Source of the DNA: Malacoraja senta
Taxonomy: Eukaryota
Assembly (NCBI GenBank): GCA_038087875.1
Contig: CM075998.1
Location: 1,116,001 to 1,180,000, forward strand
Length of the DNA stretch: 64,000 nucleotides
Direction of reading: 5' to 3'
A program made the translations under genes and the position numbers. Each line of letters opens with the position of its first letter. The first letter of the stretch is position 1. The notes under the pieces were generated by a model. That model was not told where the DNA came from and ran no database searches. It saw only the letters and a list, made by a program, of their open reading frames with translations. Positions 27,272-63,178 of this stretch are shown here, piece by piece.

Positions 27272-27344
27272 ATGGCGGAAGAGCTGCTCGCCGGGTCCCA
27301 GTGGCCAAATTCAAGAGATGCCTATGAGCTTCAGGAAATCATCG
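27272..27344 (+). CDS. STK39: SPAK-like kinase exon 1 (73 nt)
   Basis: ATCATGG Kozak context; MAEELLAGSQWPNSRDAYELQEII(G); donor G|GTCAGT. Confidence 0.9.
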
Positions 27345-28474
27345 GTCAGTCTCTTCCTAATCATTTTAAGTAAAGGTGACGGATCTAAATAAATGTAACG
27401 ATCGCAATGGCATAGGAAATAATCCTTCCCTTGATTGTTTTTTGTAGTTCAATTTCAGTCTAGTATGTGCGGCATTATTAATTCTGAGCGATTTCAATCT
27501 TTGCATGTGCCCAGCCTGCACTATTAACTGGGTGCAGACGGACTGCGTCTTATTTTATTTTTTTAAAAACCGGCGCAGTTTTTCATGACATGTCAAAACA
27601 ACAACAAAAAACAAATCGGCTTTCTTTCTGATTTACATGCTGCAAACGTTCTGATTTATAAATGCATGTTTCGGGGTCGGGAATATGCAACAGAGTATGT
27701 TTCGCCCTGCTGTTTTCATTTTCTTCTCGGACTGGTTGATCCGGGTTCTGCAGTAATGAATGAAAGTTAAACATATTGAAAGTGGTTCTGATGACAATCT
27801 GTCTGCCAGCCCCCTCTTGACATGTTTGCTAAACCGCGACGCTGCTACATCATGTCAAACGGGATGCCCTGCAATAATCTTTTATATTTGAAGGTTTTCT
27901 AATATATATATATATACACATAGTGAAATGGCAGCTGATGCCCGCCACCATACGAAACGTAAGTATTTATATAAATCACAAAGTAATTCATCAGGGTTAT
28001 GGGGGTGGGTGTGGGGTCAGGTGGTCTCACGGCAAATTTGCATGAGGCAGAACGACGTTAAAAGCTTCTGGGAAAGTAAAAAGGGAGAGATTGTTTGTAC
28101 TCGTTGGTGAATCGGTAAAGAAGGGGCCGCGGCCTCAGAGTTGTCTAACTTTCTTCTTCAGACGATAATTTCTATGTACACAGCTAGTTGTCAGGACGTG
28201 GAACAGTTTGCCACATGTAGCTACTGTCGCAGAGAAGTTTGAAAAGCAATTGAAAGTTTATGAACAAAAATATTAAACAAAGTAAATGAGGCAAGAACAA
28301 GTGGATGGGAATGGACAACTCCAATAGCGAGCCAGCACAGATTTGATGGACTGAATGGCCTCATTCTGTACTATAAGATTGTTGATTCTTTAATTTGAGA
28401 TCAAGAATGCATGATACGAAATGTGACAGGGATTTAAATTGCCACCATGGAAGAACAAATAATCTAACCCCTTG

Positions 28475-28563
28475 GGCCACAGAGATGCTGCCTGGTCTGC
28501 TGAGTTACTCCAGGACTTTGTGTCCTTTTGTGTAAACCAGCATCTGCAGTTCCTTGTTTCTAA
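28475..28563 (+). mobile_element. Short Penelope-tail insertion with 14-bp TSD
   Basis: AATCTAACCCCTTG at 28461-28474 and 28564-28577. Confidence 0.8.
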
Positions 28564-30017
28564 AATCTAACCCCTTGTCTCTTTTTCCCTCATAAAAGAG
28601 TTAACTTAACTTGGTACCAACACACTTTCTTAGTGTTCAGACCTTGTTTTATTGCATTTGTCATTTTCTATGTAATTGTTGCCATCAAATGTTTCTGATT
28701 AACAACATTTTCATTCAGAGGTAAGGTTGATTTCATTACCAGCTCTGCAGATTAAACAATCACAGTTTCAAAAGCTGTTTTGTATTGTATTGGGTGCCCT
28801 CAGGTGGAATAGTTGCAAAGTGACAATGGACCTGCGATCACTATACAGTTTCACTTTGGATGGTAACAGTATTGCGTCTGGTTAGGACCCTCCTCATTAC
28901 CGAACACTGACCCAATATTGTTCTTCAGACTTGTTTTATATATCAGATATGATAGCGCTACTGGATCCCAGCAGAATGAATCTCTTGGTGTGTTTGAGAG
29001 AGCTGTACAAAAAAAAATCAGGTGTGGTACTGTTAAAACTGTAAGAAAATGCAGTGATTTGGTTGGTGGCATAATTGGACAGGTGAATATGTCTATCGTG
29101 GCACAATTGTAAACCTGTCTCTAAAATAAAACTGTTGAGTAAAAATAGTAGATTATGGAAGCTTGGACAGTTTAATGGATCTATCTTCTGTGTGAAATGT
29201 TTCACACAGCTGACGGGTTAGTGTTTTGGAGCAGGTTTCTCCAGGCTTCTTCAGAAGCCAATTAAGTCTGCCAGAGACTAGCCACTACCAGTGACTTCAC
29301 CCTGTAGCGTGTCAGCATGATTTTGCACAAAGCTGGATAAAGCCTCATATTGGGCCTCGGATCAAAATCAATACATTCAATTTTCAGTTCCTTTCACTAC
29401 TTGTCTCTGAAAGATGCTGACCCAGGCTGAGGGTGGGTTTCTTTGCACTGAGGTATTCTTTAATATAATGTCAGTTGTGGAGTTTAAGAAGGCTGTGGAG
29501 AGGGAAAATTACAACCAACTTTTAGCCAAACCCACATTTCTCCTCCTCCAATATACAAGAGGCTCTGACTATCAGCCAGAGGTGGGAGTGGAGTGTGGGT
29601 TGCACTCTCACTAGTCCATGGGTGCTGATACCAATTGGAGTGCCCATTTGCTGACCAGGCTGAGATCAGTTTACCTGGTACGGGACAGGGATCGGTCCTG
29701 GTACTTCCAATTTACATGGGTGAGATTAATGTTTAAAACTGTCTTTCACCATTGGTTGATTGGGAATGCAGGTACAGATAGCTATTGTACACTGGAGGGT
29801 ATCACAGCCAAGTCCAGTACTTTCCTATGAGTCAGACACAAAATGACCTTTTCAGCCAAATCTGATCCTGGACTGGGAATGGAATCTTGGCTTTCCTTAT
29901 CTTAGAGACATGAGTGTTAATTGTAAGGTTGGCCATTACCATCATTACAAATGCGATCAGTGAGCTCAACACAGGCTAATGCCAGGATCTTCCAAATCCG
30001 TAATAACAACAAACTCT

Positions 30018-30255
30018 TGATGCTGGTTTACGCAAAAGGACTGGAGTAACTCAGCGGATCAGGCAGCATCTCTGGAGAAAATGGATACGTGACGTTTCTG
30101 GTCCGGACCCATCTTCAGACCAAAATGAATAGGTGACATTTTGGGTCTGGACCCTTCTTCAGACCTGAAGAAAGTTCCCACCCCGAAATGTCACCAATCC
30201 ATTTTCTCCAGAGATGCTGCCTGACCCACAGAATCACTCCAGCATTTTGTCTCTA
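30018..30255. mobile_element. Fold-back Penelope-tail element (two minus units and one plus unit)
   Basis: Inversion junction CTTCAGAC|CTGAAGAA at 30164/30165. Confidence 0.8.
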
Positions 30256-30599
30256 TGCTTCCAAATCTGTGTTGAACACGTCAACACCGAAGCAATTGGG
30301 AAGGGACTGCACCCACTTACAACAGCTGACATTTACTTTATGCATGTTGGAGCAAAATAATATTTGGAAACTACACCATTTACTCTTTTCCTCTTGTACA
30401 TGGATTATTGTGTTGTATGTAGCGATTGGTACAACTAGATTCATAAATGATGGACAAATTTTGGCAGGTTGTGTGCTCCTTCTGCTCTTTGTTCATGACT
30501 TACTTCTGTGCTGTATTGTTTTTACAAAAGAATGATTTTCCCCCGTACAAAGATGCTGAAATGCATATGCCAATCCAGGAATCCAGTTGGCATCATTAT

Positions 30600-30771
30600 T
30601 TAGATGCAAGGAATTGCAAAAAAAAAGACACAAAATGCTGGAGTAACTCAGCCGGTCAGGCAGCATCTCAGGTCTGAGAAAGAGTCCTGACCCAAAACGT
30701 CACCTATCCATGTTCTCCAGAAATGCTGGCTGACCCGCTGAGTTACTCCAACACTTTGTGTCTTTTTATGC
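30600..30771. mobile_element. Fold-back Penelope-tail element with 9-bp TSD
   Basis: CATCATTAT at 30591-30599 and 30772-30780; inverted arms. Confidence 0.75.
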
Positions 30772-33044
30772 CATCATTATGCTATGGAGAAGGACAGCAA
30801 AGTAATCTAGAGTCTTGACAGCAGCCATTTGTCTGATTAAAACAGTTCTGTGTTTCCCCATTTAACCTGATCCCACTCTCCTGCTCACTCCTGATTTCCA
30901 TTAATATTCTTTATCAAGCAATTCCCTTTATATGAGGAAAAAAATGTACTTCATTTCAACAATAGTTTGTGACAGAAAGTTCCTCTTTCTAAAGCCCCTT
31001 TTTGTAAAGAAAATGTCACAGTCTCCCTTTTTAATTCTTTTGATGATTACTATCAGTTCAAACATGCAAAGAAGGACCTTTGCCCACAGCTTCTGCTAGC
31101 CACTGGTGCATAAGTGGAATTGCCAAAGTGCTGAGTCCGAGTCTCTTTCAGGAAGAACATAAAATGGATTACATTCTTATTTTGTAAGTTGGTGTGGGTG
31201 GGCGAGGGGGTGCTGACAGAACACAAAGCATTGTTGGTCTCACCATAATCTGCAATTTATGAGCCATAAATGTATATTTGAAAAAATCAATGCATTTAAA
31301 AATAAGGATAGAAAATACTTTCTTTTAATTAATTTGCATTGTATGTCATCATAAATCTCCTCTATCCACAATTAGTAAGAAAGTGATTAGGCTCAACATG
31401 GCAGTGTGTGGAGTGTTTTGGTACTGTACATTTTGTAGCACTCTGCACAATATTGATCGGTAACCCGCAAAGTGAAATTTAGTATGTTTTTTTTTAATCT
31501 TCCAGTTTTCAGCCCACTTTCCTTCCTGCCAGCATTTGTTTCAGGGCAAAGGCACAGTTTCACAGGTCCTTGCAGCCTATCGGCACCTCAGACATGGTAC
31601 ATGTGCCTTGCCAGTGAGTGTCAACAGATTCTTCAAATTAATATCTACTCAAATACACTTAACGGCAAGGGTTATTGAGATAGCAATCAGGTGTGGGAAT
31701 CTTAGCTCAAGAAGACAGCCATTCAGTTCTCGATTGTAATATGATTTATGATATTATCACTGATCATTAGAGAAGTTGATAGAAAGAGGAATAAAGAAAT
31801 GTAGGAATTTGGTGGAATTTATGATTACTATTAGTAAATACCGTAAACAGTGGTGTGCACTGGTTGATTGAATAGCCTCTTTTCTGCATTGTAATTTGTG
31901 TGCGGGTGCTCGGAATGGATGTCTGAGAGTGTATCAATCTATTCATGGGTATCTGTATGCAGGTGTGTGCACTGCAGTCCATAAAAATGCTGATCAGAAA
32001 CTGCAAGTGAAAATGGTTCATCAAAAAGAGGATCCCCTGGTCGTTTTGAACAAGTGGCAGATTCTTGAGAACTTGCCCATGAGCTCTCTGTTTCATGCTA
32101 TATAACTGTGTTACACAGCTAATCATTGTAGAGATTTGCAGGTTTCAATGCTAGCTGTATCACTGTTTCTTCTGTGTTATACATCAACATGACTGCTCCA
32201 TGTGAGCCATCAAGCATCACTCAATTTGGCAGGTAAACAAAATTTGTGAATAATTCATTAGTAATCCAAATTCTGTTGGAAGCGATGAAGAAAAGAGTGA
32301 TGGTAGTGATTTCCCAAAAATGCACTAGAAAGGACTGATTTTATCTGATGTTATTAACTTTCAAAGTTTGAACGGAGAATGTTTCCTCTTTGGGTAAAAG
32401 CAGATTTGGACTGAAAACATTAGCGGATTGGATTACACCCTGTCCCTCTTCCCCACGCCACAGCTTTGTTTGCAAAGATGGAATTGTCTGACCCCTGTTA
32501 CAGCACGTTCATCCATTGTGATTTTGCAATGCGATCTTTCATTGGTCTCAACATTTTGGTATCCAGTTGCCGTACTTTTTTTAAAATGTCCATATTTGAC
32601 TATTTTTAAATAGTTCTTTTCCCCACTTTAATGTAGTCTGCTGAAAGGAGCCAGAGGGCTGGTGCTGGGGAGGGAACAAGAGTAGGTTGAAGCATTTGCC
32701 AGTAGTACAGCCAAAAGGGGAACCAAATAAATCTGCAAAGGAACATAGGAGAGGAAAACACATAAAAACGCACAGCAAGGAAAAGCAACTTGAGAAAAAA
32801 AGTGTCTGCAAATGGAATTAGTACATTAAATAAGTACCCAGGAAGGGGATTTGCAAGTATAATAGCACCCAGTCAAGATTGAGAAACATCTCAGAACTGT
32901 TTTATGTGGAAGGAAGGTAGTTATTGCAACATGGGCTACTACAGTGGTCTCTTTTCAATATTTATACATAGCCCTGGTTATATTCCGAGTGGAATACTAT
33001 GAATAGTTGTGGGTACCACTCATTAGGAAGGGTAGACTGACTAG

Positions 33045-33505
33045 AGTGATGGTAGACACAAAATGCTGGAGTAACTCAGCAGGTGAGGCAGCATCTTTGG
33101 AGAAAAGGAATGGCCGACGTTTCGGGTCGAGACCCTTCAGACTGATGTCAGGGGAGGGGGCAGGACAAAGATAGAATATAGTCGAAGACTAGTGGGAGAA
33201 CTGGGAAGGGGAAGGGGATGGAGAGAGAAAGCAAGGGCTATCTGAAGTTAGAGAAGTCAATGTTCATACCGCTGGGGTGTAAACTACCCAAGCAAAATAT
33301 GAGGTGCTGCTCCTCCAACTAGCACTGGGCCTCACTCTGACAATGGAGGAGGCCCAGGACAGAAAGGTCAGATTGGGAATGGGAGGGGGAGTTGAAGTAC
33401 TGGGCCACCGGGAGATCAGCTTGGTTAAGAAGAACTGAGCGGAGGTGTTCAGCGAAACGATCGCCGAGCCTGCGCTTGGTCTCGCCAATGTAGAGAAGTT
33501 GACAC
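33045..33505 (-). mobile_element. Penelope 3' fragment (GIY-YIG plus tail) inserted in a CR1 remnant
   Basis: RCQLLYIGETKRRLGDRFAEHLRSV...VAQYFN; flanked by CTGACTAG at 33037-33044 and 33506-33513. Confidence 0.88.
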
Positions 33506-34699
33506 CTGACTAGGAGGGTTAAATTACGAGGAAATAACACACAAAAAAGAGTGAATGGGGATCATTTGACACCCTTTCCAAAGGTCAGGGACGAGGGGCC
33601 AGAGTTTGGAGGGTGTGGTTTGAAATCTTTTGACAGAGATACAGAAATTTGTAACTCCCTGCTGCAAATAGCAGCTGATGCCAAGTCAATTGATGATTTT
33701 AAATCTGAGACAGAGATTTTTGTTAATCAAAACTACTAAGGGATATGGTGAAAAGGGCAGCTGTGTGGAGTTAGGTAACAGGTCAGCCATCATCCAAATG
33801 AATAGCTGAACAGGCTTAAAAGCTCCTGTCGTCGCCCATTCCTTCTATCCAGAAATGCAACTGTCCCACTGAGTTACTCCAGCATTTTGTGTCTATCCTC
33901 TGGCAGAAAACCTTGCATGCCCTCAAGTAACAATGTAGAGAAATAAAATTGAGAAACACTTTCATTACTTCAGTATTTTGTTTTCTCTATATGTCTTACA
34001 GCAAAGTACTATAAAAAATAAACAGCTGACAAATACGGGTAAGAGAAGTAGATTTTAAAAAAGTCTCAACAGGAAAGCAAGAGCAATAAACCTTCATGTA
34101 CTAAACTCAAACATGTCCTTTGTAAAATTACAGGCTTTTATTCTGTCACTGAGACACTTACTGAGACATCAACTGTCACAAGTACTGCCAAGTGAATAGT
34201 GAACTGTACTGAGTTTAAGGTCTTGATATTTCAACACCTGTCTCTTGTGTATATATATAACACCTATGGCCTATCTCCACTAATCTTATTTGCTTATATT
34301 AGGCCCGTATTTCTCTATGCCTTTCTTATCTACGTACCTGTGTTGGAAGATCAAGACTTCAAGCTCACTACAGCTCACAATTCACTGGGCAGCAGTAATC
34401 CCCATGTGCCCAGATGCTTGAACCTTAGCAGCACCTTTTGCACACATCCTATGAATTGCCACATTTGCAGACTTCTTTTCTAACTTCATATCTGGGAACT
34501 ATTTAGAGCAGGGGGTAGTGCGTAACTAGTTAACAATAGAGTCAAAAGCAATCAGCAATTATCTTTCCATTATTTCTTTCTACTAGCAGTTGATTTTTTA
34601 CAAACATTCTTGTGTTTTTAGAGAATATTTTGCAAAAGATGCACGATTTTACCACTTTTTGCGCAGAAAAGAGGTTAACGTGGGCTGTGACGACACAAC

Positions 34700-36270
34700 C
34701 ATGAAACAGACCGAAGATAGACACAAAAAGCTTGAGTAACACGGGGGGTCAGGCAGCATCTCTGGAGAAAAGGAATAGGTGACGTTTCGGGTCAAGACCC
34801 TTCTTTTTCTCAGCCTCGATCCTTGAGATCTGCCAAACAGCTCAATCAAAATAATAGGTGGAGACCTGCCCACTAATTCTGAGGGACTAGCATGCACTGG
34901 GTAGCAAAATAAAAAATGGATAGAGTTAAATTTCCCCTGATGTAGGTGAATGATGGAATGTGTGAATAATACATTGCAGGGAATATTGGTGGTGAATGGA
35001 ATAGAGAAAGAAAAATGCTGGAAGGACGTGGCAGGTCAGGCAGCATTTGTGGAGACTTGACGGTTCAGGTTATTAGTTTGCATATCCTGTATCAAAATAA
35101 CACAAAAACAAACTCCTGGAAATGCTTTTTAAGACAGCATCTGTGGAGAGAGAAAACAGTTAATGGTTCATACTGATGACCTTTTGTCAGAACAGTTCCA
35201 GTCTTCAAATCTGTTCAGAAAGGAAAATGATTCTGAGAGCCCTTTATTATGTACAGTGGTGACGAGTGGCGTAGTAACTCTGAGCAGTGGCTGATTGTAA
35301 ATATGCAGCTCCTTGTCTGCTGCCAAGATTTAAAAAAGGACCACGTGAAGTGAAAATGATTGGAAGCATCTTTATTCACAGCTGAGCACTGGGCCATCAC
35401 GAACAGTGACTAAACAAAACAGATAACATAATCTGCGGCCTGGCCCTTACCAGGAGGAAACTCAATTATAAGAGTCTGCCTGGGGTCTATTACCTTTATT
35501 ACAACAATGTTTATACAACATTAAGAATGAGGCATTTAAACACTTCTGTTCCTCGCTCAAGGTGCTGAGTCATGCTGGAGAATTCAGTACTCTGGACACG
35601 GATATCTCTTCACAACCTTATTGTTTTTCACGAAGACAGCAAATGCTGTTATGTGCAGGAAGGAATTGCAGATGCTGGTTTACATCGAAGATAGACACAA
35701 AATGCTGGAGTAACTCAGCGGGACAGGCAGCATCACTGGAAAGAAGGAATAGGTGTCATTTCAGGTCGAGACCCTTCTTCAGACCGAGAGTCAGGGGAGA
35801 GGGAGTCTAGAGAAATGGAAGGGCAAGGCATGAAAACGACAGATCAAAGCAGACACTGCTCAAGGAAATGTAGAATGGTTTATCGTTGGTTGAAGAGAAG
35901 GTGACAACCCATGAATCGGGAGTCCAGTGGGAAATGAACAAATGATTAAGGGGTTTGAAATAGCTACAACAAGGTAAAATAAAACCTGTCTGGAGAGGCA
36001 GCCAGTGTGTGAGTGTGTGTGCACACAACAAGCTGAGCTTTGTTCTCCATGAACTAACTACATGACTAAAGGAGTCTGTGATTAAAGGTTTGAATATTGT
36101 AATCTGAAACCAAGTACTCTCTGATGGTCTCCAATCCAGACCGTGAAAATCAAAAGAAAATCTGCAGATGCTGGCAATCTAACATAAAAACAGAACATTA
36201 GGGCAACGTGCAGCACGTCAGGTGGCATCTGTGGGAAGAGAAACATAGTCAACATTGTGGGTCAAAGACT
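34700..36270 (-). mobile_element. Cluster of about five Penelope-tail copies of different ages
   Basis: Copies near 34711-34810, 35005-35060, 35110-35190, 35655-35910 and 36160-36270. Confidence 0.7.
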
Positions 36271-37004
36271 GTCGGCACTGGGATGGAGGGCAGAAACATT
36301 TAAAGATTTAGGGAGAGTGGATGAGGGGGGACGTAACAGCCTGGATGATAGACCCTGAATCCTCAACTATCTTTAGAGTGAAACTCGGGGGTACGTACAA
36401 ATCAGCAATAGAACCCACTTGACTGCAGGGATCTTGAGTGTGGCTGGTGGGGAAATCTCGTTGGTTATACTGATGACTGGTCCATATTGACATGCAGTGA
36501 ATGCCATATCTGGGTCAACGGATTATTTCGGCACTAATGTAGGAACAACAAGGAACCGCTGAAATGTGACGCTCTGCCTTGGAGCGCCAAGATTGATGAT
36601 TTGCGAAACTCCCAACCTTTGAGGTAAATAGAGGGATTCCGTATCCTTCCTTCCCTTTCTAAAGACAGGTGGAGAACCAACAGCAACAGCAGGAACTGTT
36701 GTCCACCTGGCTGATTGTCACTTTGCAATGGTACTTACAGCAATTAGGAGACTTCAGGTGAGACTTCAGGTGGATGCTGATTGCCAGCAGAGTGAGAGGG
36801 ACATCACTGAGCCATGGTCAGAAGAACTCTGCTGCCTTTGGGTCAATGAGGTAGTGCCTGCTGCTGCAGGGGGCTGACTACTTCGCACCATGCTTCAATT
36901 GCTTTTGAGAGTGACAATGGACATGCTGGACTGAAGGGGAACAGAGCCTGTGGACTCAGAAGTGAGAAAAGTAACGCTACGTTAAATCGTTAAAGTTTAC
37001 AAAG

Positions 37005-37305
37005 GTTTAGAGATACAGAGCGGACACAGGCCCTTCAGCTCACTGAGTCCGCGCCGACAAGCGATCCTCATACACTAACACTATCCTACACACACTAGGG
37101 ACAATTTACAATTTTACCAAGCCAATTAACTACAAACCTGTACGTCTTTAGATTGTGGGAGGAAACCGAAACACCCGTAGAAAACCCATGTAAGTCACGG
37201 GGAGAACATACAGACTTCGTACAGACAGCACCCGTAGTCAGGATTGATCCCGGGTCTCTGGTGCTGTGAGGCGGCAACTCTACCGCTGCACCACCGTGCC
37301 ACCCA
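37005..37305 (-). mobile_element. V-SINE (HE1-like)
   Basis: Reverse complement of the 24949-25240 family. Confidence 0.8.
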
Positions 37306-39421: not shown

Positions 39422-39534
39422 GCTGCGGGGCTACTGCCGTGGTGCAGGCGGCTCTCTGCAAACCCAAAAATGAGCGGGTGGCGATAAAGAGAATAAACCT
39501 GGAGAAATGCAACACGAGCATGGACGAGCTGCTG
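39422..39534 (+). CDS. STK39: SPAK-like kinase exon 2 (113 nt)
   Basis: CTACAG|GC; [37 protein letters not shown]; CTG|GTGAGT. Confidence 0.95.
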
Positions 39535-40789: not shown

Positions 40790-41676
<887 letters not shown>

Positions 41677-44365: not shown

Positions 44366-44507
44366 GCTCTATGCTGGACATAATCAGGAAGACAGTGAGC
44401 AGGAATGAACACAGGACTGGCGTGCTGGATGAACCAGTGATCGCAACCGTTCTCAAAGAGGTGTTGGAGGGCTTGGATTATCTGCATAGGAATGGACAGA
44501 TACACAG
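44366..44507 (+). CDS. STK39: SPAK-like kinase exon 4 (142 nt)
   Basis: TTCAG|GC; [46 protein letters not shown](R); AG|GTGAAC. Confidence 0.95.
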
Positions 44508-45485: not shown

Positions 45486-45541
45486 GGACGTTAAAGCTGG
45501 TAATATTCTACTTGGAGATGATGGATCGATACAAATTGCAG
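45486..45541 (+). CDS. STK39: SPAK-like kinase exon 5 (56 nt)
   Basis: TTCAG|G; DVKAGNILLGDDGSIQIA; G|GTAGGT. Confidence 0.95.
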
Positions 45542-46897: not shown

Positions 46898-47007
46898 ATT
46901 TTGGCGTTAGTGCCTTTCTGGCTGGTGGTGGGGATATGACCAGAAATAAAGTGCGCAAAACCTTTGTGGGAACTCCATGCTGGATGGCCCCTGAAGTGAT
47001 GGAACAG
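46898..47007 (+). CDS. STK39: SPAK-like kinase exon 6 (110 nt, activation loop)
   Basis: GCTAG|AT; [37 protein letters not shown]; CAG|GTAAAT. Confidence 0.95.
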
Positions 47008-49614: not shown

Positions 49615-49752
<138 letters not shown>

Positions 49753-50535: not shown

Positions 50536-50669
50536 GTTCTGATGGTGACTCTCCAGAACGAGCCCCCTATTCTCGAGACGGGTGTAGAGGACAAGGAGAT
50601 GGTTAAGAAGTATGGCAAGTCCTTCCGTAAACTGATTGCCCTGTGCCTGCAGAAGGACCCTACAAAGAG
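50536..50669 (+). CDS. STK39: SPAK-like kinase exon 8 (134 nt)
   Basis: [44 protein letters not shown](R); AG|GTGTGT. Confidence 0.95.
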
Positions 50670-50861: not shown

Positions 50862-51098
50862 AGCTGGTAGAGCTGCTGCCTCGCAGTGCCAGGTTCGATT
50901 CTAACCTCAGGTGCTGTCTGTGTGGAGTTTACAAGTTCTCCCTGTGATCACGTGGGTTTCCTCCCATATCCCAAAGACATGAGGATTTGTAGGTTAATTG
51001 GCCCTCTATAAATTGCCCCTGGTGTGTTGGAAGTGGATGAGAAAGGGGGATAACGTAGAACTAGTATTTTCAGGTGATTGCTGGTTGGCATGGACTCA
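50862..51098 (+). mobile_element. V-SINE (HE1-like); tail appears split by the following CR1 and resumes near 52084
   Basis: V-domain present; ...GGCATGGACTC at 51087-51097 continues as GACTCGCTGGGCTGAAGGGCCTGTTTCC at 52084. Confidence 0.7.
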
Positions 51099-52083
51099 TA
51101 CATAGATACATAGAAAATAGGTGCAGGAGTAGGCCATTCGGCCCTTCGAGCCTGCACCGCCATTCAATAGGATCATGGCTGATCATCCAACTCAGTATCC
51201 CGCACCTGCCTTCTCTCCATACCCCCTGATCCCTTTAGCCACAAGGGCCACATCTAACTCCCTCTTAAATATAGCCAATGAACTGGCCTCAACTACCCTC
51301 TGTGGCAGAGAGTTCCAGAGATTCACCACTCTGTGTGAAAAATGTTCTTCTCATCTCGGTCTTAAAGGATTTCCCCTTATCCTTAAACTGTGACCCCTTG
51401 TCCTGGACTTCCCCAACATCGGGAACAATCTTCCTGCATCTAGCCTGTCCAACCCCATAAGAATTTTGTAAGTTTCTATAAGATCCCCTCTCAATCTCCT
51501 AAATTCTAGCGAGTATAAGCCGAGTCTATCCAGTCTTTCTTCATATGAAAGTCCTGACATCCCAGGAATCAGTCTGGTGAACCTTCTCTGCACTCCCTCT
51601 ATGGCAATAATGTCCTTCCTCAGATTTGGAGACCAAAACTGTACGCAATACTCCAGGTGTGGTCTCACCAAGACCCTGTACAACTGCAGTAGAACCTCCC
51701 TGCTCCTATACTCAAATCCTTTTGCTATGAAAGCTAACATACCATTCGCTTTCTTCACTGCCTGCATCTCCCCTTTTCCTAATTGGCCACCATTTAGATA
51801 ATTGTCTGCTTTCCTGTTTTTGCCACCAAAGTGGATAACCTCACATTTATCCACATTATACTGCATCTGCCAAACATTTGCCCACTTACCCAGCCTATCC
51901 AAGTCACCTTGCAGTCTCCTAGCATCCTCCTCACAGCTAACACTGCCCCCCAGCTTAGTGTCATCCGCAAACTTGGAGATGTTGCCTTCAATTCCCTCAT
52001 CCAGATCATTAATATAAATTGTAAATAGCTGGGGTCCCAGCACTGAGCCTTGCGGTACCCCACTAGTCACTGCCTGCCATTGT
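51099..52083 (-). mobile_element. Young CR1 (HER1-like) LINE, 5'-truncated RT with 3' UTR
   Basis: ORF 51351-52070: SGVPQGSVLGPQLFTIYINDLD...ISKFADDTKL...RPHLEYCVQFWSP. Confidence 0.92.
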
Positions 52084-52740
52084 GACTCGCTGGGCTGAAG
52101 GGCCTGTTTCCCTGCTGTATCTCAGTATCGCTATAAGCTTTGACATTGAAGGATAGGATGAGTGCCTGTTCCTACTCTCGTCTACGAATGAACCATAACG
52201 AGCCATCCAGTTATAGCTGGGGGTTGCAAGTCATGAGGAAGCATGGGAACAGATGAGGAGGTGGGAACAGTGATCGCAAACCTCCAATAACTTGTGGCAA
52301 AAACAGCCTGATGCACCGTGCTGTGTGTGTGTGAAGTATGGATAACAACGTGGAAATGTGCCAGGTACTAAACCTTGTGGCTGGGGGTGGGTGAACGCAG
52401 AGCGTCTACTACACATGAACACAAGCGTCCCGTCCTGCCAGTGTTTAACTGACGACACTGTTCAGGCTTGGACACTGGGTGTCCAGTTTGCATTTCAATG
52501 TCACTCATTGCTCCCACACAGCCATGTGTGACTAGGGAGCACAAAGGGACGGCAGCCAACTCCCTCCACGAGGAGAAACTGGGGCAGAGGGTAGCGAGGC
52601 GGTAAAGAAAAGAGGAAGTGTGCTGCTGATGTCTGAAGTTTACCTGATGTGGCCTCCGGGCTGCCGGTTCATCGCAATGCCTCGACCCTTCCTCCCCGCT
52701 TTCAACGTGCCCAACTCACTCTGTAAACTCTATTTTACAG

Positions 52741-52789
52741 GCCCACTGCAGCAGAGCTGCTGAAGCACAAATTCTTTCAGAAATCAAAG
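52741..52789 (+). CDS. STK39: SPAK-like kinase exon 9 (49 nt)
   Basis: TTTTACAG|G; PTAAELLKHKFFQKSK; AAG|GTAAAT. Confidence 0.93.
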
Positions 52790-53609: not shown

Positions 53610-53675
53610 AATAAAGATTATTTGATGGAGAAGTTGTTGGGACAACCACAATGCAGAGGCCAAAGGGACCCAAAG
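53610..53675 (+). CDS. STK39: SPAK-like kinase exon 10 (66 nt)
   Basis: TTGTTTCAG|AAT; NKDYLMEKLLGQPQCRGQRDPK (22 aa, aligns to NREYLIEKLL...RAKK); AAG|GTAAGG. Confidence 0.9.
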
Positions 53676-55219
53676 GTAAGGGCTGCTTGTCGGTCATTCT
53701 GGGAAGCTCGGGGTGGGGGAAGATTTGCATTTGCACTCTGGTGTCTAAAAACCTCTGCCTTCAAGTTTGGTTAACCTGCCTGAATTGAGCACTGCTAGTG
53801 GACCGGTGATACAGTAGTTTACGCAACACACTGATGAGCAAAGTGGTATACAAAGTACTAAAGAGGTGATGGAAACTTAGAAGGCAGATGTGTGCAAAGG
53901 TTGTGTATGGTGTCGTAGAACCAAAGCAAGCTGCTGTTGATTGGAGTAACAAACTGCTTGATGCTTTATAAAGGAGTCAGGAGTCTAATGGAGACAAACT
54001 AAGTCATAGCTGTTCACTGGCTTCAAGCCTTACTTTGTTCCTCGTCACCTACAACACAGGAAAATCCCTTGGGAAAGTGTCTACATCAGGCAATGGCAGG
54101 CAAACTGTTTGCTTTTCAGCTTCACTTGGACAACATGTCTCATTTCAAGCTTATGGTGCCCAGAGATGAGGCAAGAAAAGGCAATATTCTGAGATTTTAA
54201 ATCAGGCTTAAAAATCCATGAAGTTTGGGCCAAGGCGCAAAGAGACACTGCATGTAAAGAGGATGGATCTAGGTGCAGCACTTTGGACTGCTCAGAGGGA
54301 CACATCGATCCGTGCCTTTTCAACTCTATACACTGGCGCAAATAGACTTCTTCTATCTCCTTGCAGGCTGACAACACAGTGCAAGCTACTGGCACGATAC
54401 CAAAGTCTGCGAGTGAGCCCGGGCCTAGCAAAAAGGTCTGTATTTCCCGAAAGCGCCAGAGAATATTACCCAGCAGAGGCAGTGCAAGTTTTCACAACAG
54501 ATTGCCCAGACTCAAAGCAAGCACCATTTAGCACACTCTGCTCCACATCAAATGGTTGGCAAGGTCAAAGATGCCATCATTCGAATACAACATTAATCCG
54601 GTCTCCATCACCCTGTCCAGGTGGATGTTTAAAAACAAATATCAGCCAGCATTATTCAGTAACAGAAATGGGGCTGTTCTCTTGCCTAACATCCATCCCT
54701 GACCACACATTGCATTGCTGTTTGTAGATCATAAGCATAATCATGCTTTGCGCAAATTTCTGGCTGCAATTGTCTACGTAGCAATAGTAACGGCACTTAT
54801 AAAGGACGGCGTGTTTCTCACTGACATGTAACGACGGTGTAGAAATGCACTTTCATTCCTCGTGGATGTATCGCGTGTTTGTCACAGGATCACACTTTGG
54901 TATCAGTTAGAAACGAGCTGAAGTCTGTGCCAGCATTTATCATTTCCAGACCTGCTACCCCACCTTCATCAGGATAGAATTATCATTGTAGATCAACCCA
55001 TTCAGCTCCTCACAGCAGAGGTAAAGGTAGCATGTTGTTGAATCACAAGATGTTCACTAGTTACTTACAGTAGGGCAGTGGATGTAAGATGAAGGGTGAG
55101 AATCATGGCAAGCGTACAAAGTTCATATGACTTGTATTCCAAGCTCCAGTTCCCACCTCAGTAACTTGCCCTTTAGTAGTGGTGCTTTTCCTGTGCACTT
55201 CCTGTCCAACAGCAGATGG

Positions 55220-55958
55220 CTAGAACAAAGAACGGTACAGCGCAAGAGCAGGCCCTGCTGCCCACAATGTGTTGAACATGATGCCAAGATCATCTCTGAC
55301 CAATCATTGCCTGCACATAATCCACACCCCTTCATTCCCTGCATGTCCATAAGTTTCTTAAACGCCACGATCGTATCTGACTCCACCACAGCAGTGCATT
55401 CCAGGCACTCGCCAGCCTTTGTGTAAAAACAAAAACTTGCCCGCACATCTCCTTTAAACTTTGCCCCTCTCACCTTCAAGCTATACGCTCTGTGTGTAGG
55501 AAAGAACTGCAGATGCTGGTCTAAATCAAAGGTAGACATAAAATGCTGGAGTAACTCAGTGGGACAGGCAGCATCTCTGGAGAGAAGGAATGGGTGACGT
55601 TTAGGGTCAAGACCCTTCTTCAGACTGAAGGGCTAGAGAGCTATGCTCTCTAGATTTGAGTTTTTTCCATGCTGAGAGAAAAAAAAGTCTGCCTGCTGAC
55701 TCTATCTACCCCTCTCATAATTTTATATACTTATATCAGGACTCCCCTCAACTCGTTCCAGAGAAAACAATCCAAGTCTGTCTAACCTCTCCCTGTAGCT
55801 AACACCTCACAATCCAGGCATCATTCTGGTAAACCTTCTCTGCACCCTCTCCAAGGCCTCCACATCTTTCCTGTAACGGGGTGACCAGAACTGCATGCAA
55901 AACTCCAAACGCAGCCTAACCAAAGTCCTATAAAGCTTCATCATGACTTCCTGACTCT
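55220..55958 (-). mobile_element. CR1 3' fragment with a nested Penelope-tail copy (55493-55630)
   Basis: SLKVRGAKFKGDVR...; tail motif 55593-55623. Confidence 0.75.
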
Positions 55959-55959
55959 T

Positions 55960-56462
55960 ATTGAGGCAGTGCAGCGTAGGTTCACCAGATTGATCCCTTG
56001 GATGGCGGGACTGTCATATGAGGAAAGATTGAAAAGACTAGGCTTGTATTCACTGGAGTTTAGAAGGATGAGGGGGAATCTTATAGAAACATATAAAATT
56101 ATAAAAGGACTGGACAAGCTAGATGTGGGAAAAATGTTCCCAATGTTGGGCGAGTCCAGAACCAGGGGCCACAGTCTTAGAATAAAGGGGAGGTCATTTA
56201 AGACTGAGGTGAGAAAAAAAAAATTCACCCAGAGTTGTGAATTTATGGAATTTCCTGCCACAGAGGGCAGTGGAGGCCAAGTCACTGGATGGATTTAAGA
56301 GAGAGTTAGATAGAGCTCTAGGGGCTAGTGGAGTCAAGGGATATGGGGAGAAGGGAGGCACAGGTTATTGATAGGGGACGATCAGCCATGATCACAATGA
56401 ATGGCGGTGCTGGCTCGAAGGGCCGAATGGCCTCCTTCTGCACCTAATTTCTATGTTTCTAT
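55960..56462 (+). mobile_element. CR1 (HER1-like) LINE 3' end
   Basis: QRRFTRLIPWMAGLSYEERLKRLGLYSLEFRRMRG...; tail TTCTATGTTTCTAT. Confidence 0.9.
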
Positions 56463-56811
56463 ATTCAATGCCCTGATCTATGAATGCAAGCTAAAAGCAA
56501 GTGTCCTGTTTGCTGCACTGTGTGAGGGATAAAAACCCATACACGCACTAATAGAGCTCACGGCTAGCTCGTGGGTCGGCTCCGTGCATAACTGAAGTAG
56601 TGAGCAAGGGGAATGTCCACAAACAGTGGGGCAGGGTTGAGCTCCTGATGCTGTGGATGATAGGCAGTGTCTGGGCTTACGAAACAGGGTCCCTCGGGTC
56701 ATCGGTGCCTTTAGACGAAGGCAGGAGAAAACTGCCAGCAAGAAGTGTCGTCTTGGCAGGAAATCAAAATGCTGCCGACTAACCTTGCAGCTGCACTGTG
56801 ATTGCCTGCAG

Positions 56812-56934
56812 ACGATGCGCATGCAGGGGTCGAGCGGTCACTTGTACAAAACCGAGGACGGAGGCTGGGAATGGAGCGACGATGAATCAGGTGACGGATA
56901 CGATGAATCAAAACCTGCCGCCTATCAGAAAGCG
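56812..56934 (+). CDS. STK39: SPAK-like kinase exon 11 (123 nt, S-motif and WEW motif)
   Basis: CTGCAG|ACG; [41 protein letters not shown]; GCG|GTGAGT. Confidence 0.92.
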
Positions 56935-57083
56935 GTGAGTGCATCTGCCTCTTTCTTGCAGCTGGCAATAAACAACCTCCCCTTTCAAGTGAAGTAAAAT
57001 CAGATATATTCTTTCTTGACGGCTCCAGTTTAATCCAATCTGAATTATCTTCACAGACTGAGAGTCCGTGCTGACATCACTAA

Positions 57084-57400
57084 AGATAGATTCAAAATGC
57101 TGGAGTAACTCAGTGGGACAGGCAGCATCTCTGGAGAGAAGGGAATGGGTGACGTTTCGATTTGAGACCCTTCATACGGAGAGTCAGGGGAGATGGAGAC
57201 TGGAGATATGGAGGGGCAAGGTGTGAAAACGACAGATCAAAGCAGACTATGGTCAAGAAATGTAGAATGGTTCATTGTTGGCTGTGAGGAAGGTGACAAC
57301 AAGGCAAACAATCAGTAGTATTTAGTCAGGACAGTGAAACTAGTCTGAGAACTAGGATGGGGAGGGACGGAGAGAGAGGGAAAGCAAGAGTTACTTGAAG
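57084..57400 (-). mobile_element. Penelope 3' UTR/tail copy
   Basis: Matches 35690-35910 and 33053-33250. Confidence 0.8.
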
Positions 57401-58065
57401 ACGTTACTGAGGTTAGCTCCATGGCTGAGGCTCCTGGTCAGCAGTGACTGGGTCTATCTCACCCAGGGCCTTTGTGTGTGAGATGAACTGTCGGCCTGCA
57501 GAAACATCACAACTGGGATGGAAGTCGATGTTCACAGGTGCTTGTTTTCCCAAAAAAGTAGCAGGGGAGGTGAGATGAGTCAGTAGCTATAGAATGACAC
57601 AGCATAGGAGAAAGCATAAGATGAACTGTCGGCCTGTCCTTTTAAAAAAAGATATCCAGTTAGTTACCTCGTGCCTTCTGCACAGCCCACAACTTTTTTT
57701 CCTTTTCAACTTTTGATCTAATTCCCATCTGAAAATTCTAATTGAATCTATTTCCACAGCTCTTTGAGGTTGTGTGCTCCAGATTACAAAAATAATTATC
57801 TTGCCTGCACCAGTTATCTTCATTCAGTCAGTGGCAGTAGTTTCTCCCCAGTCTGCTCTACCCAAATCCCTCAATTTTGAGCACCAAATCTTCTTTAGCG
57901 TTCTCTGCTCCAGGTTGAACAAACTTAGCTTCTCCAGTCTCCCTGCAGCACTGCTGGTCAGTCCCTTCTCTGGCTTGGAGTTCGACCAAAAGTGTATCTC
58001 AGTCCACTTGACAATGATAAATCAATACCAGTTCTAATTAACATTTGCTATTTTGATTTTGCCAG

Positions 58066-58133
58066 GGGCCGTCAGGAAGTTCATCACATCTGATGAACCA
58101 GGGTGGACCTATTCTCCTTGTTCTAAGATTGAG
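58066..58133 (+). CDS. STK39: SPAK-like kinase exon 12 (68 nt, start of CCT domain)
   Basis: TTGCCAG|GGG; GPSGSSSHLMNQGGPILLVLRL(R); AG|GTAAGC. Confidence 0.88.
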
Positions 58134-58449
58134 GTAAGCAACATCCAGCCTCTGCTCAATGTCTTAGCAGGTTCCCTGCACACACTGGAATGAGCTGTTG
58201 CAATGGAGCAACTTTCAGTTGGTGCCGCCATGCCTGCAGCACCATTGCGGAGGCTTGCATGTTGGTGGGAGAGCATCTCTGCCGTTGAAGGAGGTTGACA
58301 AGGTCATCCTCCGAGAGAATCTTGTGGAGGGAGAGTCCTCCTCGACTGGGAGAATGTTCTACCATGTGCGAGAGACATTAACGGGTACTGGGAGAAGGGG
58401 AGGATTTTCAACAATATAATATTTTATATTGTATTAACTGTTTGCACAG

Positions 58450-58502
58450 GAATTTACAAAGGCAGTTGAATGACATCAGATTTGAGTTCACTCCAGGCAG
58501 AG
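58450..58502 (+). CDS. STK39: SPAK-like kinase exon 13 (53 nt)
   Basis: [31 protein letters not shown]. Confidence 0.95.
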
Positions 58503-59104
58503 GTAAGTCCCACTTTGTTCCTTTTTAAATTAGCAACTAGATGCTGGAGAATTGATATTTGTTAGCATCCATTTCTAGAACCACGCTGTCTGCTTATGCT
58601 AGCACCAAATCAGCCGTGTGTTGTCTTGGTTAGTGATGGGGCAGGACTAACTGGGACTGGGAACAGTAAAATAACTATTCGAGAGGAACAGTGGACAACT
58701 CTAAGAACAGCTCGCATTAACTGCAGAGGGACCAAAGGTATTTCTGACCTTAATGTCTAATGGACAAAGAATGGATGTTCACACAGAGGGCAGTCCATAT
58801 CTGGAAGGACCTGCCAGAGGAAGCTATAGAAGCCAATACAATTATGACGTTTAACAGACATTTGGACAGATCCGGATAGGAAGGGTTTAGACTTAGAGGG
58901 ATTAGGGCCAGGCAAAAGGCACCAGCGCAGAATGCCAACTTGGTTGGCGTGGACAAGGTGGGCTGAAGAGCCTGTTTCTGTGCTGCACGGCACTATGATA
59001 GTCAAGTTTGAGCTTCAGGCTGATGCTGTCCTAATATGTGCTGGAAACTATTTCACACAAGATTGTTTCATGCTGGAGCTCATTTCAAACATCTGTCCCT
59101 GCAG

Positions 59105-59173
59105 ACTCTGCCATCGGCGTTTCTCAGGAACTTGTTTCTGCAGGATTAGTGGACGAGTTTGACATGCTGGTTG
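59105..59173 (+). CDS. STK39: SPAK-like kinase exon 14 (69 nt)
   Basis: [38 protein letters not shown]. Confidence 0.95.
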
Positions 59174-59731
59174 GTAAGTCCCAATTGCAACATATTCAAC
59201 TTCCAGCTGAATGTATAGGCCAGAGCAGCAGTCAGGATAATGTTGGTGTTGGCACCTCCATGTTAGTGAGCAAGAAGAAAATCGATAGGATTCTCCCTTA
59301 GACCAGTTGGGCATATAATTCAGGGGACCAAATTAATAATTTTCTGAGCAGTGAGTTCAGATCCCACCACAGCAGATGGGAAATGTAAATTGTTATTTGT
59401 AAAGAAAATTGGCATTCAATAACGATAATGAAGCCACCAGCCTCCAGATAACCCGAGGGTTTTACCCGTGTCCTTTAGAGAACAGAATTTGCCACCTTCA
59501 TGATCTGACCCACGTGTGACTCCAGACCCAGAACAGTGTGATCAACTCCTAACCGAAAAGGTGCAGCGAGCCAGTTAATGAGGGATGGGGAGTAAACGCT
59601 GTCTGTCAACAGCACCCACACCCAGTGACTGAGCAATTGAAACAAACTGTTGGCCTCGGTAAGCCCCAGGTGAGAGTGGGTCAGAAAATGTGGCACAACT
59701 TTGGTCAGAATAGCTCTGCAGAATAGCTCTG

Positions 59732-60158
59732 CAACTCCCGCCCGAGTTGCGGGGTTGAAGCGCACCTGGAGCGGGGCTTTATCCCCCCGCGCGGCTTGGA
59801 ATGGCCACCGGACTTTGCGGGCGCGCGCCGGGGCTCTAACACCAAGACCCGGTGCGTGACCTTGCATCACCCGGCGTGGCTTTAATGGCTGCGGGACAAT
59901 CACCATCGCCCGCCGGGGGCTTTGACTTTGACTCTGACATCGGGGGGGGGGGGGGGGAGTGCAGTGGAGAGATACGTTTTTTTGCCTTCCATCACAGCGC
60001 TGTGATGGATGTATGTGTAAATTGTGTTGTGTCTCGGGTCTTCTTCGTTTTGTATTGTATATAATGTATGGCTGCAGAAACGAACGACATTTCGTTTGGA
60101 CCTCAAGGGGTCCAAATGACAAATTTGTCCAAAAGACAAATAAATTGAATTGAATTGA
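59732..60158 (+). mobile_element. CpG-rich non-autonomous retroelement (hairpin family) with (AATTG)n tail
   Basis: Perfect palindrome TCCATCACAGCGCTGTGATGGA 59988-60009; 3' stem-loop TTTGGACC-TCAAGG-GGTCCAAA; AATAAATTGAATTGAATTGA end. Confidence 0.7.
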
Positions 60159-60624
60159 TGGTCTTTTCACCTCCCACAACCAAAGTGTTGCTGAGTTGCG
60201 AGTGTAAATATCCATCACAGGCAGGTCAACTTGCTGATGATCTTGCCTGACGACAGAGAGCTGAAACCTCACTGGAGCCTGAGGGCTCGCAGTCCCCCTT
60301 AAGGGACATTGGGGGTTCGGTCCAGTAAACAGAACATGTGGACGGGCCGGACTTTGGAAGTGGCGCCAAAACATGGCGGCGCCTGCATGCGTAAATATGC
60401 AAAAAATATGCAAATCAAGCAGCATCGAACGATTAAGTTTCCCTTCCCTGCTGCTTCTGAATACGCTACATAGAGGGCATTAGCCCACTCCAACCCATTC
60501 ATTAGCTCAAGAGTGTTTTATTGTCATACGTCCCCAAACACAACGATTGAATTCTTACTTGCACGATATCTGGAGGATACAAGGTCCTGTTCCCTGCTAA
60601 TGTTGCTTTCTGTTGTTTCTTTAG

Positions 60625-60689
60625 TGGCTAACAACCTGCAGAGACTAATCGATGACCCTCATTCGAACAGGACACTCACATTTAGACTG
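60625..60689 (+). CDS. STK39: SPAK-like kinase exon 15 (65 nt)
   Basis: TCTTTAG|TG; VANNLQRLIDDPHSNRTLTFRL; CTG|GTAAGG. Confidence 0.95.
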
Positions 60690-63106
60690 GTAAGGAGACC
60701 AAAACAAACCTCTATCTCGGAACTTCTCAAAGATTTAAAGTGTTTCTTCGACCAGTTTTGCAGAATCTCGTGGATTGCGAACAGCTGTTGCTTTACCCAA
60801 CTTTTGCCAGACAGATGTTTTTAAAACTGGAGAATGAATCACGCTGTAATATTGAGTGGCCAAGTAAATGGACCCAGGCATGGTTCACTTTATAGTTCCC
60901 AAAAGAGCTGATTGGATTCTTTCACAGAACACTGGCATGAACTGCAGATTCTGGCAGTTGCTTCCCAATCGCCCTCTGACTGTGGCCCAGTTATCAAAAA
61001 CTATTTTGTACCCAGACGTCCGTTGCTATTCCAGGATTAGCGAGAGGTACGGACATCGCGAGGCTTTTCCTTTCAGTGACAGAGCTCCCTTGCCCCTCCC
61101 TCTTGTAATCTCCACACCAACTGGGAGAAACACATTGATGTTTCCATCTCAAAAACCAGGGCCATCTGAGTTTCCATCATCACAGCCTTGTCAATGCCAG
61201 CTCCACCTATTCCCACATTGCCTGCCCCCTCCTCGGCCCACCCACGCCCACTCTTCTTCCAATCTGCTTCACCCATTGCTCCAGTCCTTCACTGTGCTCT
61301 GCGCACTTTGACATTGCCTTCAGAAGCCCGGTCTGTAACCCACTTGGTCCGGTCTCTCACGTCCACAACTTTGTTCAGCTCCTGTTTTTCACACTCGTCT
61401 GACTTTGTACCAACACCGCTCCACCTTCCTGCCCTCTCCTCACCAACTACTGATTTGCATTTCATCTCTTTCCTCTAGAACTCACTCGCCAAATCCTTCC
61501 CCTCTTGCTACCTTCAGAATTCCCTTTCAATCGGTCACCTCTTGAATTCCTCCTGCTCCATTTTGCGGTGGCTGGTGCTTTGACGTCCTACACTCAGGAT
61601 GTTGCTTGGCTGGCTGTATTATTGTCTTACTGGTCTGTGCATTGATAGAAAGCCCAGCACGACTGTACATCAGGTTTCCTTGAAACAAAATCTCAATGCT
61701 GGGTTGGAGGAACCAACCCACACCCTGAGCACCGAGTATTTTGTATTATTAATGCAATGGCTTCAGGTTTTGGGTTCAGCCCAGACTCAAGGAATGAGGA
61801 GCTCGTGACTACTTGAAAGGGTCAAAATTGGCATGACTGGGTAGCCTCAGAACCATCTTAAAGTTCAAGGCAGCACAGCTTCACAATCTCTGAGGCCATG
61901 GGTAGTTGGCATCAGTGGAAAGGAGCAGAGTGGGATCTGGATGTGACAGACTCAGACACATGGTTAAATTGGGATATATCACACTACCTGACTGACCCCT
62001 CTCCCATACGTTTCACAGGCTCGTTCACCTCTTGGCAATTTTAACTGCCAAACTTTCAATGCATGACAGAATTCTATCCGGAATCATGAGGGCAAAATGT
62101 GCTCGGCTTTAAGTGTTTAAAGTTGTAAAATATAACCATTCTCTAAAGCAAGATTAAAAACGATCCTGAACGGAGGTGGTTTGAATGGCTTTTCTCTCGG
62201 GATAACACCCAGTATGTGATCATTGTGCATCACATTGCAGAGCTAGAGAAGCAACCTTGTTGGAAAGCCCCTGGTATGAATGATGTAAAAACTAAGTTCA
62301 GTTCTTAACACTGACCCATCCACATCCACCCCGCCATGGAATTGTGACCTGGATCTTTAAAGAAAATGCAACCCCAACTTTGTACTAAGCAGCAAGCGGC
62401 ATCACCTCACGGCAGAGTCCAAAGCAGGCTGACCTGGTCTCTCGGGCACGGACTCTCCCCTCGAACTAGCCTCTGCTGCCGCCAGGCACCTCTGCAAGAG
62501 GTCGGCCGGGCACTCGACGATCGTGGTGTCGTCAGGCTGGCTGGGCAACTAAGCACGTGAAAGAGTTCTCACAAGCAGCAAGCCAAAGTGCAAAGGTCGA
62601 GGCAAACGCCTTGAATGAAAATACATTTTGGAAATATCAAAGAATTTAAATTTGTAAAGATTATATTTTGAAATGTTTATCTAAGGAAATTACAACCAAC
62701 AGACAAAATGTAAGAGCAGTGTATGTTAACCACTAATTACAGTTCAGTGTGACATTTAAAACTCACTTAGATCTCGGCATCAAAGCCCAACCTTGTCAGA
62801 GTATTTAACAGCAGGACTAAATTCCACTAATTTCTTCAGACTCAGGCCAAACTGTGGAGTGCGGAGCCGAGTCAGTGACAGGAACCTTGAGATTTCCGCA
62901 TTCAATGACGTCCCTGTGGAAATCCCAAGGTTGCTCTCGGTTTCATGGAGTTTATGGATTTGATGGATTTGCCATTCGGGACCATTGTAGCCAAACCACC
63001 CCCTCTCTCCACACTTGCTATCTAGTTGTGCACATTGACTGCTCAATAACGGGTGGAAAGGAATGTCAGCCGCAAGCTCACTCTTCGCCCCTCGTTCTCC
63101 TCGCAG

Positions 63107-63178
63107 GTCTCTGGCTGTGAGGGTTACAGCCCAGACGAAACCAAACTGATTGGATTTGCACAGCTCAGCATGAGATGA
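63107..63178 (+). CDS. STK39: SPAK-like kinase exon 16 (72 nt coding, stop)
   Basis: CTCGCAG|GTC; VSGCEGYSPDETKLIGFAQLSMR then TGA; matches the family C-terminus KLIGFAQLSxS. Confidence 0.95.
   Translation, partial: VSGCEGYSPDETKLIGFAQLSMR

Follow-up and report, generated by a model that had tools for sequence, protein, structure and literature searches.

An elasmobranch gene for a probable third vertebrate SPAK/OSR1 kinase, head-to-head with a CERS5/6-type ceramide synthase

All accounts of WNK–SPAK/OSR1 signalling present it as a system of two kinases. The stretch of Malacoraja senta DNA analysed here (64,000 nucleotides of contig CM075998.1 in assembly GCA_038087875.1, hereafter the window) carries a SPAK/OSR1-type kinase gene on the plus strand and, head-to-head with it on the minus strand, a CERS5/6-type ceramide synthase gene, of which exons 1–3 are in the window and the remainder lies to its left. 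The locus raises the question of whether this pair is the elasmobranch form of STK39 and its neighbour CERS6, or something that the two-kinase scheme does not include. We find that the kinase is probably a third vertebrate SPAK/OSR1 paralogue, distinct from STK39 and OXSR1 and kept in elasmobranchs beside a CERS5-type gene.

An intact SPAK/OSR1-type kinase gene

Motif searches, and tblastn searches that used family proteins as queries, located the kinase exons, whose boundaries we then set on the DNA; the window contains no runs of N. The gene comprises 16 exons between an ATG at 27,272 and a TGA at 63,176–63,178, a span of 35.9 kb, and its coding sequence of 1,404 nt encodes 467 amino acids, with consistent phases and GT–AG at every intron (Table 1). 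A preliminary description of the locus had proposed an intact, compact (36 kb) gene of this type for a 467-residue protein, head-to-head with a ceramide synthase, and our reconstruction, with the three ceramide synthase exons mapped on the minus strand, bears out both points. The start at 27,272 is the most plausible one: in-frame ATGs upstream of it would have to be read through a TG-type simple repeat. From this start, the N terminus of the protein would be MAEELLAGSQWPN.

By kinase domain, by T-loop and S-motif and by CCT domain alike, the protein belongs to the SPAK/OSR1 (GCK-VI STE20) kinases. Alignment with family members shows that the VAIK lysine, HRD and DFG are all kept, as are the T-loop threonine that is the WNK target and the serine of the S-motif (GSSG.L.KT). 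The CCT is full length, with exons 12–16 aligning across the domain with STK39 and springtail sequences and exons 13–15 with deer OSR1, and it retains the Arg-Phe of IRFEF, the Asp of GRD and VSQEL..AGL, residues that we take to line the RFxV pocket, following established OSR1 work and the pocket numbering of the OSR1 CCT structure. In Pfam, single kinase exons match Pkinase, and exon 13 alone matches OSR1_C weakly (17.7 bits, E = 0.004), a score below the cut-off because only a fragment of the domain is encoded there. From these conserved residues, we predict that the gene encodes a functional, catalytically active SPAK/OSR1-type kinase.

Transcripts from related species support the gene model. 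We aligned contigs from four small transcriptome-like runs of relatives to positions 56,750–60,750, and a 1,461-nt contig (run X23) and a 586-nt contig from another organism (run X25) cover exons 11, 12, 14 and 15, with contig coordinates contiguous at the modelled junctions. A stretch of 54 nt between exons 12 and 14 corresponds to the 53-nt exon 13, and the unique intron sequence of the region has almost no contig coverage. Runs of this size (90–180 million letters) are too small for a single-copy gene to be assembled from the DNA of a multi-gigabase genome, so the contigs represent spliced mRNA, and the kinase gene is spliced and expressed in two related species. The same contigs join exon 11 directly to exon 12, which confirms that the linker before the CCT is short. 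The two exon differences listed between contigs and window (56,889 A>G and 59,136 T>C) fall at third codon positions, and both are synonymous by codon reading. The runs also contain 0.2–0.4 of the words of positions 63,100–64,000, which include the last exon and the 3′ untranslated region (UTR).

These observations bear on the idea that the gene is a decaying or non-functional copy, either a pseudokinase or a pseudogene. High divergence (described below), the shortened linker and a change of LATGGD to LAGGGD in the activation segment would be in keeping with decay, but the frame is open over 16 exons with canonical splice sites, every catalytic and regulatory residue is kept, and the mRNA is spliced in two related species with synonymous differences. 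We therefore consider decay hardly credible.

Divergence from STK39 and OSR1

The best overall match of the window kinase is bird STK39, at 74.6% identity, and OSR1 follows at 74.3% over the first 362 residues. In the kinase domain, identity is 87% to mouse and chicken STK39 and 85% to OSR1, and STK39 and OSR1 are themselves 89.6% identical there. The CCT is 67% identical to that of mouse and chicken STK39. Mouse and chicken STK39, by comparison, share 96.4% of the kinase domain and 97% of the CCT, sturgeon STK39, as recovered from its genomic locus, shares 94% of 202 residues with mouse, and springtail and STK39 share 72–74% of the kinase domain and 62% of the CCT. Conservation varies along the gene: exon 6 is 95–97% identical to family members, and exon 2 is 89.5% identical to exon 2 of mouse and sturgeon STK39, which are 100% identical to each other.

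To describe the kind of change as well as its amount, we counted states at columns without variation among bony-vertebrate STK39 sequences or among OSR1 sequences; 257 of them were comparable. The window kinase, STK39 and OSR1 are identical at 211 of these. At another 32, STK39 and OSR1 agree and the window kinase differs, with the outgroup state at 10 and a change unique to the window kinase at 22. The remaining 14 columns separate STK39 from OSR1; here the window kinase has the STK39 state at four, the OSR1 state at two and neither at eight. The preliminary description had spoken of mosaic STK39/OXSR1 residues, and states of both do occur, although at more than half of the diagnostic columns the residue is that of neither.

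Features specific to STK39 are also missing. Exon 1 lacks both the SPVHVQ stretch and the proline/alanine-rich box that makes up the N-terminal extension of mouse STK39, and exon 9 lacks the Cys of LLKCKFF; SPVHVQ and this Cys are present in sturgeon as well as in mouse. Judged by these comparisons, the divergence of the window kinase is too great for an ordinary STK39.

Phylogenetic position of the kinase

We built maximum-likelihood trees of the kinases under LG+C20, one of them with sturgeon STK39 added; the STK39 and OSR1 sequences were all from bony vertebrates. The window kinase falls in the vertebrate SPAK/OSR1 clade (support 100/99–100) and outside both the OSR1 clade (99/98) and the STK39 clade (83/86, rising to 94/86 with sturgeon), and a grouping of STK39 with OSR1 that leaves it out receives support of 79–81. 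Its terminal branch is 0.30 long, compared with 0.05–0.13 for fish and frog STK39 (0.05–0.10 for sturgeon and carp). By its place outside the clade and by its atypical branch length, the window kinase does not behave as a typical STK39 orthologue would. A genuine shark STK39 would likewise branch as sister to the STK39 of bony vertebrates, so topology alone does not settle the matter; it is the amount and kind of change that is out of line.

Frog, carp and hake sequences that we checked as candidates for the third paralogue proved to be a mispredicted STK39, stk39 and OSR1, respectively.

The neighbouring ceramide synthase

The two genes are divergently transcribed and lie at most about 12.2 kb apart, rather than adjoining at 27 kb, because the 5′ UTR of the ceramide synthase gene reaches at least to 15,077. 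A 1,345-nt transcript contig of a close relative (L003, predicted protein P0279) aligns at 94–97%, joins CERS exons 1–3 and extends through the 5′ UTR at least as far as 15,077. In its alignment to window positions 1,321–1,697, L003 continues into CERS intron 3, which reflects intron retention or unspliced RNA, so P0279 ends in intron-encoded residues.

We used the open frame that contains CERS exon 3 as a protein query and considered the best 120 matches. Among the matches listed, the relative's transcript is 100% identical, a Scyliorhinus torazame fragment 93% and bird CERS5 91%, with CERS6 of bird, sturgeon and mammals at 84–88% and chimpanzee CERS5 at 84%. The earlier suggestion that exons 2 and 3 favour CERS5 thus finds support in exon 3, where bird CERS5 stands above every CERS6 among the matches listed, but not in a comparison with the mouse CERS5 and CERS6 homeodomains of solved structure, which tie. 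Residue by residue, the window gene has the CERS5 state at TSITK, KSPD, RKIQ, FRH, DKP, YP and GIF and the CERS6 state at ADLKNT and QANGP.

In a tree of 135 residues from exons 1–3, CERS6 from sturgeon to human forms a clade (98/100) on a stem of 0.22, and the three shark sequences, that of the window included, lie outside it. They stand in a comb with bird, lizard and mammalian CERS5, and the CERS5 sequences form no clade with the window gene. Every signature of the bony-vertebrate CERS6 clade, TAITKHPD and FRQRRNQEKP among them, is absent from the window gene. A fair reading of these sequences is that the window ceramide synthase is not CERS6-like and leans towards CERS5.

The Scyliorhinus torazame fragment (172 amino acids; assembly GCA_003427355.1) spans 49 kb, compared with about 13 kb covered by the corresponding exons in the window, so intron sizes at the ceramide synthase locus differ strongly among sharks.

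A second version of an ancestral kinase–ceramide synthase pair

The pairing itself is found elsewhere. At the sturgeon CERS6 locus (30.7 kb), STK39 lies head-to-head with CERS6, about 2.7 kb upstream, and the kinase is identified as STK39 by exon 2, identical to mouse at 38 of 38 residues, and by the SPVHVQ of exon 1. In human, B3GALT1, STK39 and CERS6 occur together at 2q24.3 (PMC4474914). The head-to-head order in sturgeon and the shared human locus indicate that the kinase–ceramide synthase pairing is ancestral and that the window holds a second version of it. Kinase and ceramide synthase of the window are each about twice as far from the STK39–CERS6 version as sturgeon is from human, and the window looks like a duplicate of the ancestral pair.

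Human 2q24, 3p22 and 12q13 are paralogous Hox-linked regions with sodium-channel clusters, and from this paralogy a family member would be expected at the equivalent of CERS5 (12q13). Eight papers mention CERS5, LIMA1 and COX14 jointly, and several of these deal with 12q13-type association loci. At the CERS5 loci of skink and godwit and the CERS6 locus of bamboo partridge, no upstream exon 1 or kinase was found within reach, a result with no bearing either way.

In the sturgeon contig (VSKV01001747.1), the stretch 3,950–7,350 contains stk39 exon 1 twice (7,350–7,261 and 6,595–6,506) and exon 2 twice (4,910–4,797 and 4,063–3,950), together with 787 N; the doubled exons reflect either a duplication in the assembly or a tandem repeat at this place. 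We did not find stk39 exons 4 and 5 in this contig.

Could the window instead be the shark STK39–CERS6 locus, with both genes evolving fast or holding ancestral states, and with the signatures of the bony-vertebrate genes having arisen after the split from cartilaginous fishes? The arrangement is the same as in sturgeon, the window kinase has several states found in STK39 and not in OSR1, including SSGH, and the ADLKNT and QANGP strings of its neighbour are those of CERS6. Further results weigh against a third paralogue, several of them in favour of this alternative. The word 'third' rests on comparison with the STK39 and OSR1 of bony vertebrates and is to that extent presumptive. The approximately unbiased (AU) test does not reject a grouping of the window kinase with STK39 (P = 0.24–0.27), the position also expected of a true shark STK39 orthologue, nor one with OSR1 (P = 0.12–0.13), and the long branch of the window kinase may be pulled towards the outgroups. 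CERS exon 1 shares 77% identity with human CERS6 (solved structure) and part of exon 2 is also more CERS6-like, placing the shark sequences with CERS5 or with CERS6 changes the log-likelihood by 0.01, and some of the CERS5-like residues may have been inherited from the ancestor. The evidence for expression comes from transcripts in unnamed tissues of related species.

Set against this, an STK39–CERS6 orthologue would need a roughly two- to threefold acceleration in two adjacent genes, in a cartilaginous-fish lineage that evolves slowly. The window kinase is 75% identical to STK39 versus 91–97% among sturgeon, frog, bird and mouse, and the window ceramide synthase is about 77% identical to sturgeon CERS6 versus about 89% between sturgeon and human (exons 1–3, hand count). 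The 32 sites at which the window kinase departs from a residue fixed in STK39 and OSR1 alike would also need explaining, as would a CCT that is as distant from that of STK39 as an arthropod CCT, and a CERS exon 3 that is closer to bird CERS5 than to every CERS6 among the matches listed. On this evidence, we regard orthology to STK39–CERS6 as unlikely.

A segmental duplication of the kinase–ceramide synthase block within cartilaginous fishes, after which the copy came under relaxed or new selection, is a different way to obtain an extra pair. The long terminal branch and the 22 unique changes at otherwise invariant sites would fit a young, redundant copy, and we found no orthologue outside sharks, the sole named relative of the locus being the Scyliorhinus torazame ceramide synthase fragment; the missing hits, however, reflect the limits of the searches and not a survey. 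A recent copy of CERS6 should carry the CERS6 signatures, whereas the window gene lacks them and is closest, among the matches listed, to bird CERS5; and the best tree places the kinase outside STK39 and OSR1 together, not with STK39. Duplication of this kind therefore appears improbable to us.

We return to the reading of a third paralogue. The preliminary description had seen in the kinase a candidate ohnologue of STK39 retained beside CERS5. This is strengthened by the extent of divergence, the position outside both clades, the lack of STK39 and CERS6 signatures and the ancestral pairing; the AU test and the near-equal likelihoods of the ceramide synthase tree keep that support partial.

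Searches for relatives

The best 120 matches of a protein search with bird STK39 are all STK39 of birds, lizards or mammals. A representative search with kinase exon 6 returned reference proteins and no full-length protein like that of the window, in clusters at 50% identity that merge paralogues, and a region search with the open frame around kinase exon 9 gave no candidate. Our literature searches returned no mention of a third vertebrate SPAK/OSR1 member. Automatic genome annotations may already list the window kinase under a '-like' name.

Organization of the locus

Coordinates of both genes are given in Table 1.

Table 1 Exons of the two divergent genes and the spacer between them (window positions)
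Feature	Position	Strand	Remarks
Kinase exon 1	27272–27344	+	ATG; N terminus up to start of glycine-rich loop; GT donor
Kinase exon 2	39422–39534	+	Glycine-rich loop GCGATA; VAIK lysine
Kinase exon 3	41482–41590	+	
Kinase exon 4	44366–44507	+	Last residue is H of HRD
Kinase exon 5	45486–45541	+	Catalytic loop RDVKAGN
Kinase exon 6	46898–47007	+	DFG to APE; T-loop threonine
Kinase exon 7	49633–49734	+	
Kinase exon 8	50536–50669	+	
Kinase exon 9	52741–52789	+	End of kinase domain; LLKHKFF, without STK39-type Cys
Kinase exon 10	53610–53675	+	
Kinase exon 11	56812–56934	+	S-motif; spliced to exon 12 in transcript contigs of two related species
Kinase exon 12	58066–58133	+	Short linker and start of CCT domain (LLVLRL); contig positions 645/646 contiguous at junction
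Kinase exon 13	58450–58502	+	CCT: LNDIRFEFTPGR; weak OSR1_C match; 54-nt contig stretch fits
Kinase exon 14	59105–59173	+	CCT: Asp, Val, Glu, Leu, Ala and Leu presumed to line RFxV pocket
Kinase exon 15	60625–60689	+	CCT
Kinase exon 16	63107–63178	+	LIGFAQLSMR, then stop; 3′ UTR extends rightward
CERS exon 1	14245–15077	−	Coding sequence 14245–14414; 5′ UTR at least to 15077; transcript L003 of a relative aligns at 96.7%
CERS exon 2	6273–6378	−	
CERS exon 3	1565–1695	−	Start of homeodomain
Intergenic spacer	15078–27271	.	At most ~12.2 kb between divergent genes; simple repeats

Simple repeats, (GACA)7.5 at 26,468–26,497 and (AG)37 at 26,840–26,913, lie a few hundred bases 5′ of the kinase ATG. 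Intron 11 of the kinase gene contains an interspersed repeat of very high copy number (57,018–57,400), with a summed contig depth of about 9 × 10^5 in the four transcriptome-like runs of relatives. Its loose ends and internal joints run into the hundreds, and an Rfam search with this repeat gave no match. Open frames that are remnants of reverse transcriptases of the long interspersed nuclear element (LINE) type occur at 3–221 (minus strand), 4,233–5,045 (minus), 51,354–52,121 (minus) and 55,885–56,295 (plus). They have one recurring protein string in common and lie within intron 2 of the CERS gene and within introns of the kinase gene.

A model for the origin and function of the third kinase

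We hypothesize that the block in the window arose as a duplicate of an ancestral kinase–ceramide synthase block, of which the other surviving copy would be STK39–CERS6. The duplication most likely goes back to the genome duplications of early vertebrates, and mammals would later have lost the kinase copy. If so, the same genome would presumably also carry separate STK39 and OXSR1 genes.

Given the conservation of its regulatory and docking residues, the window kinase would be expected to work much as its relatives do. Its C-terminal CCT would bind WNK kinases and SLC12 cotransporters at their RFxV/I motifs, activation would come from WNK phosphorylation of the T-loop threonine and of the serine in the S-motif, and the active kinase would then take N(K)CC and KCC transporters as substrates.

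More broadly, we lean slightly towards a history in which jawed vertebrates started out with three or more SPAK/OSR1 kinases, two of which had a CERS5/6-type gene as partner, and in which elasmobranchs still express the CERS5-linked one, with its short linker and re-tuned CCT, perhaps as a separate output branch of WNK signalling (for example, in salt handling by rectal gland, gill or kidney). A role in the rectal gland acting on NKCC1, as put forward in the preliminary description, is speculation.

Were a third paralogue to be confirmed, the history of the family would become one of three copies after the early genome duplications and loss towards mammals. As a natural variant whose docking domain has diverged, the kinase would be of use in studying CCT specificity, and it would become a new candidate for regulating NKCC1-driven salt secretion in the animals in which NKCC1 was first studied. 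The locus as a whole would be a clean case of a conserved bidirectional kinase–ceramide synthase pair retained in duplicate.

Comparison with known systems

Of the ceramide synthases, bird or mammalian CERS5 resembles the window gene in DKP in exons 2–3, in YP...PLA-GIF in exon 1 and in compactness (the introns of the window gene are 8 and 4.5 kb). In contrast to CERS5, the window gene retains the CERS6-type ADLKNT and QANGP.

Invertebrate kinases of the Fray type, here from springtail and horseshoe crab, share with the window kinase the ten outgroup states that have been replaced in both vertebrate paralogues, including EKCN, IATV and TGTAPYH. The window kinase is nonetheless a member of the vertebrate clade, and it matches the springtail protein at only 74% of kinase-domain positions and 56% of CCT positions.

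OXSR1/OSR1 has in common with the window kinase the short N terminus, the HRDVK catalytic loop and the conserved T-loop and S-motif. It differs in its diagnostic residues, few of which the window kinase shares, and in forming a clade of its own, and OXSR1 is not, to our knowledge, adjacent to a ceramide synthase.

STK39 offers the closest parallel. Both genes have the same exon plan and the same order of kinase domain, S-motif and CCT, both stand head-to-head with a CERS5/6-type gene, and the window kinase has several residues of STK39 rather than of OSR1. In the window kinase, however, the linker is some 40–60 residues shorter and His replaces the Cys of LLKCKFF, the CCT stands at 67% identity where STK39 orthologues share about 97% among themselves, and the neighbour is not CERS6-like.

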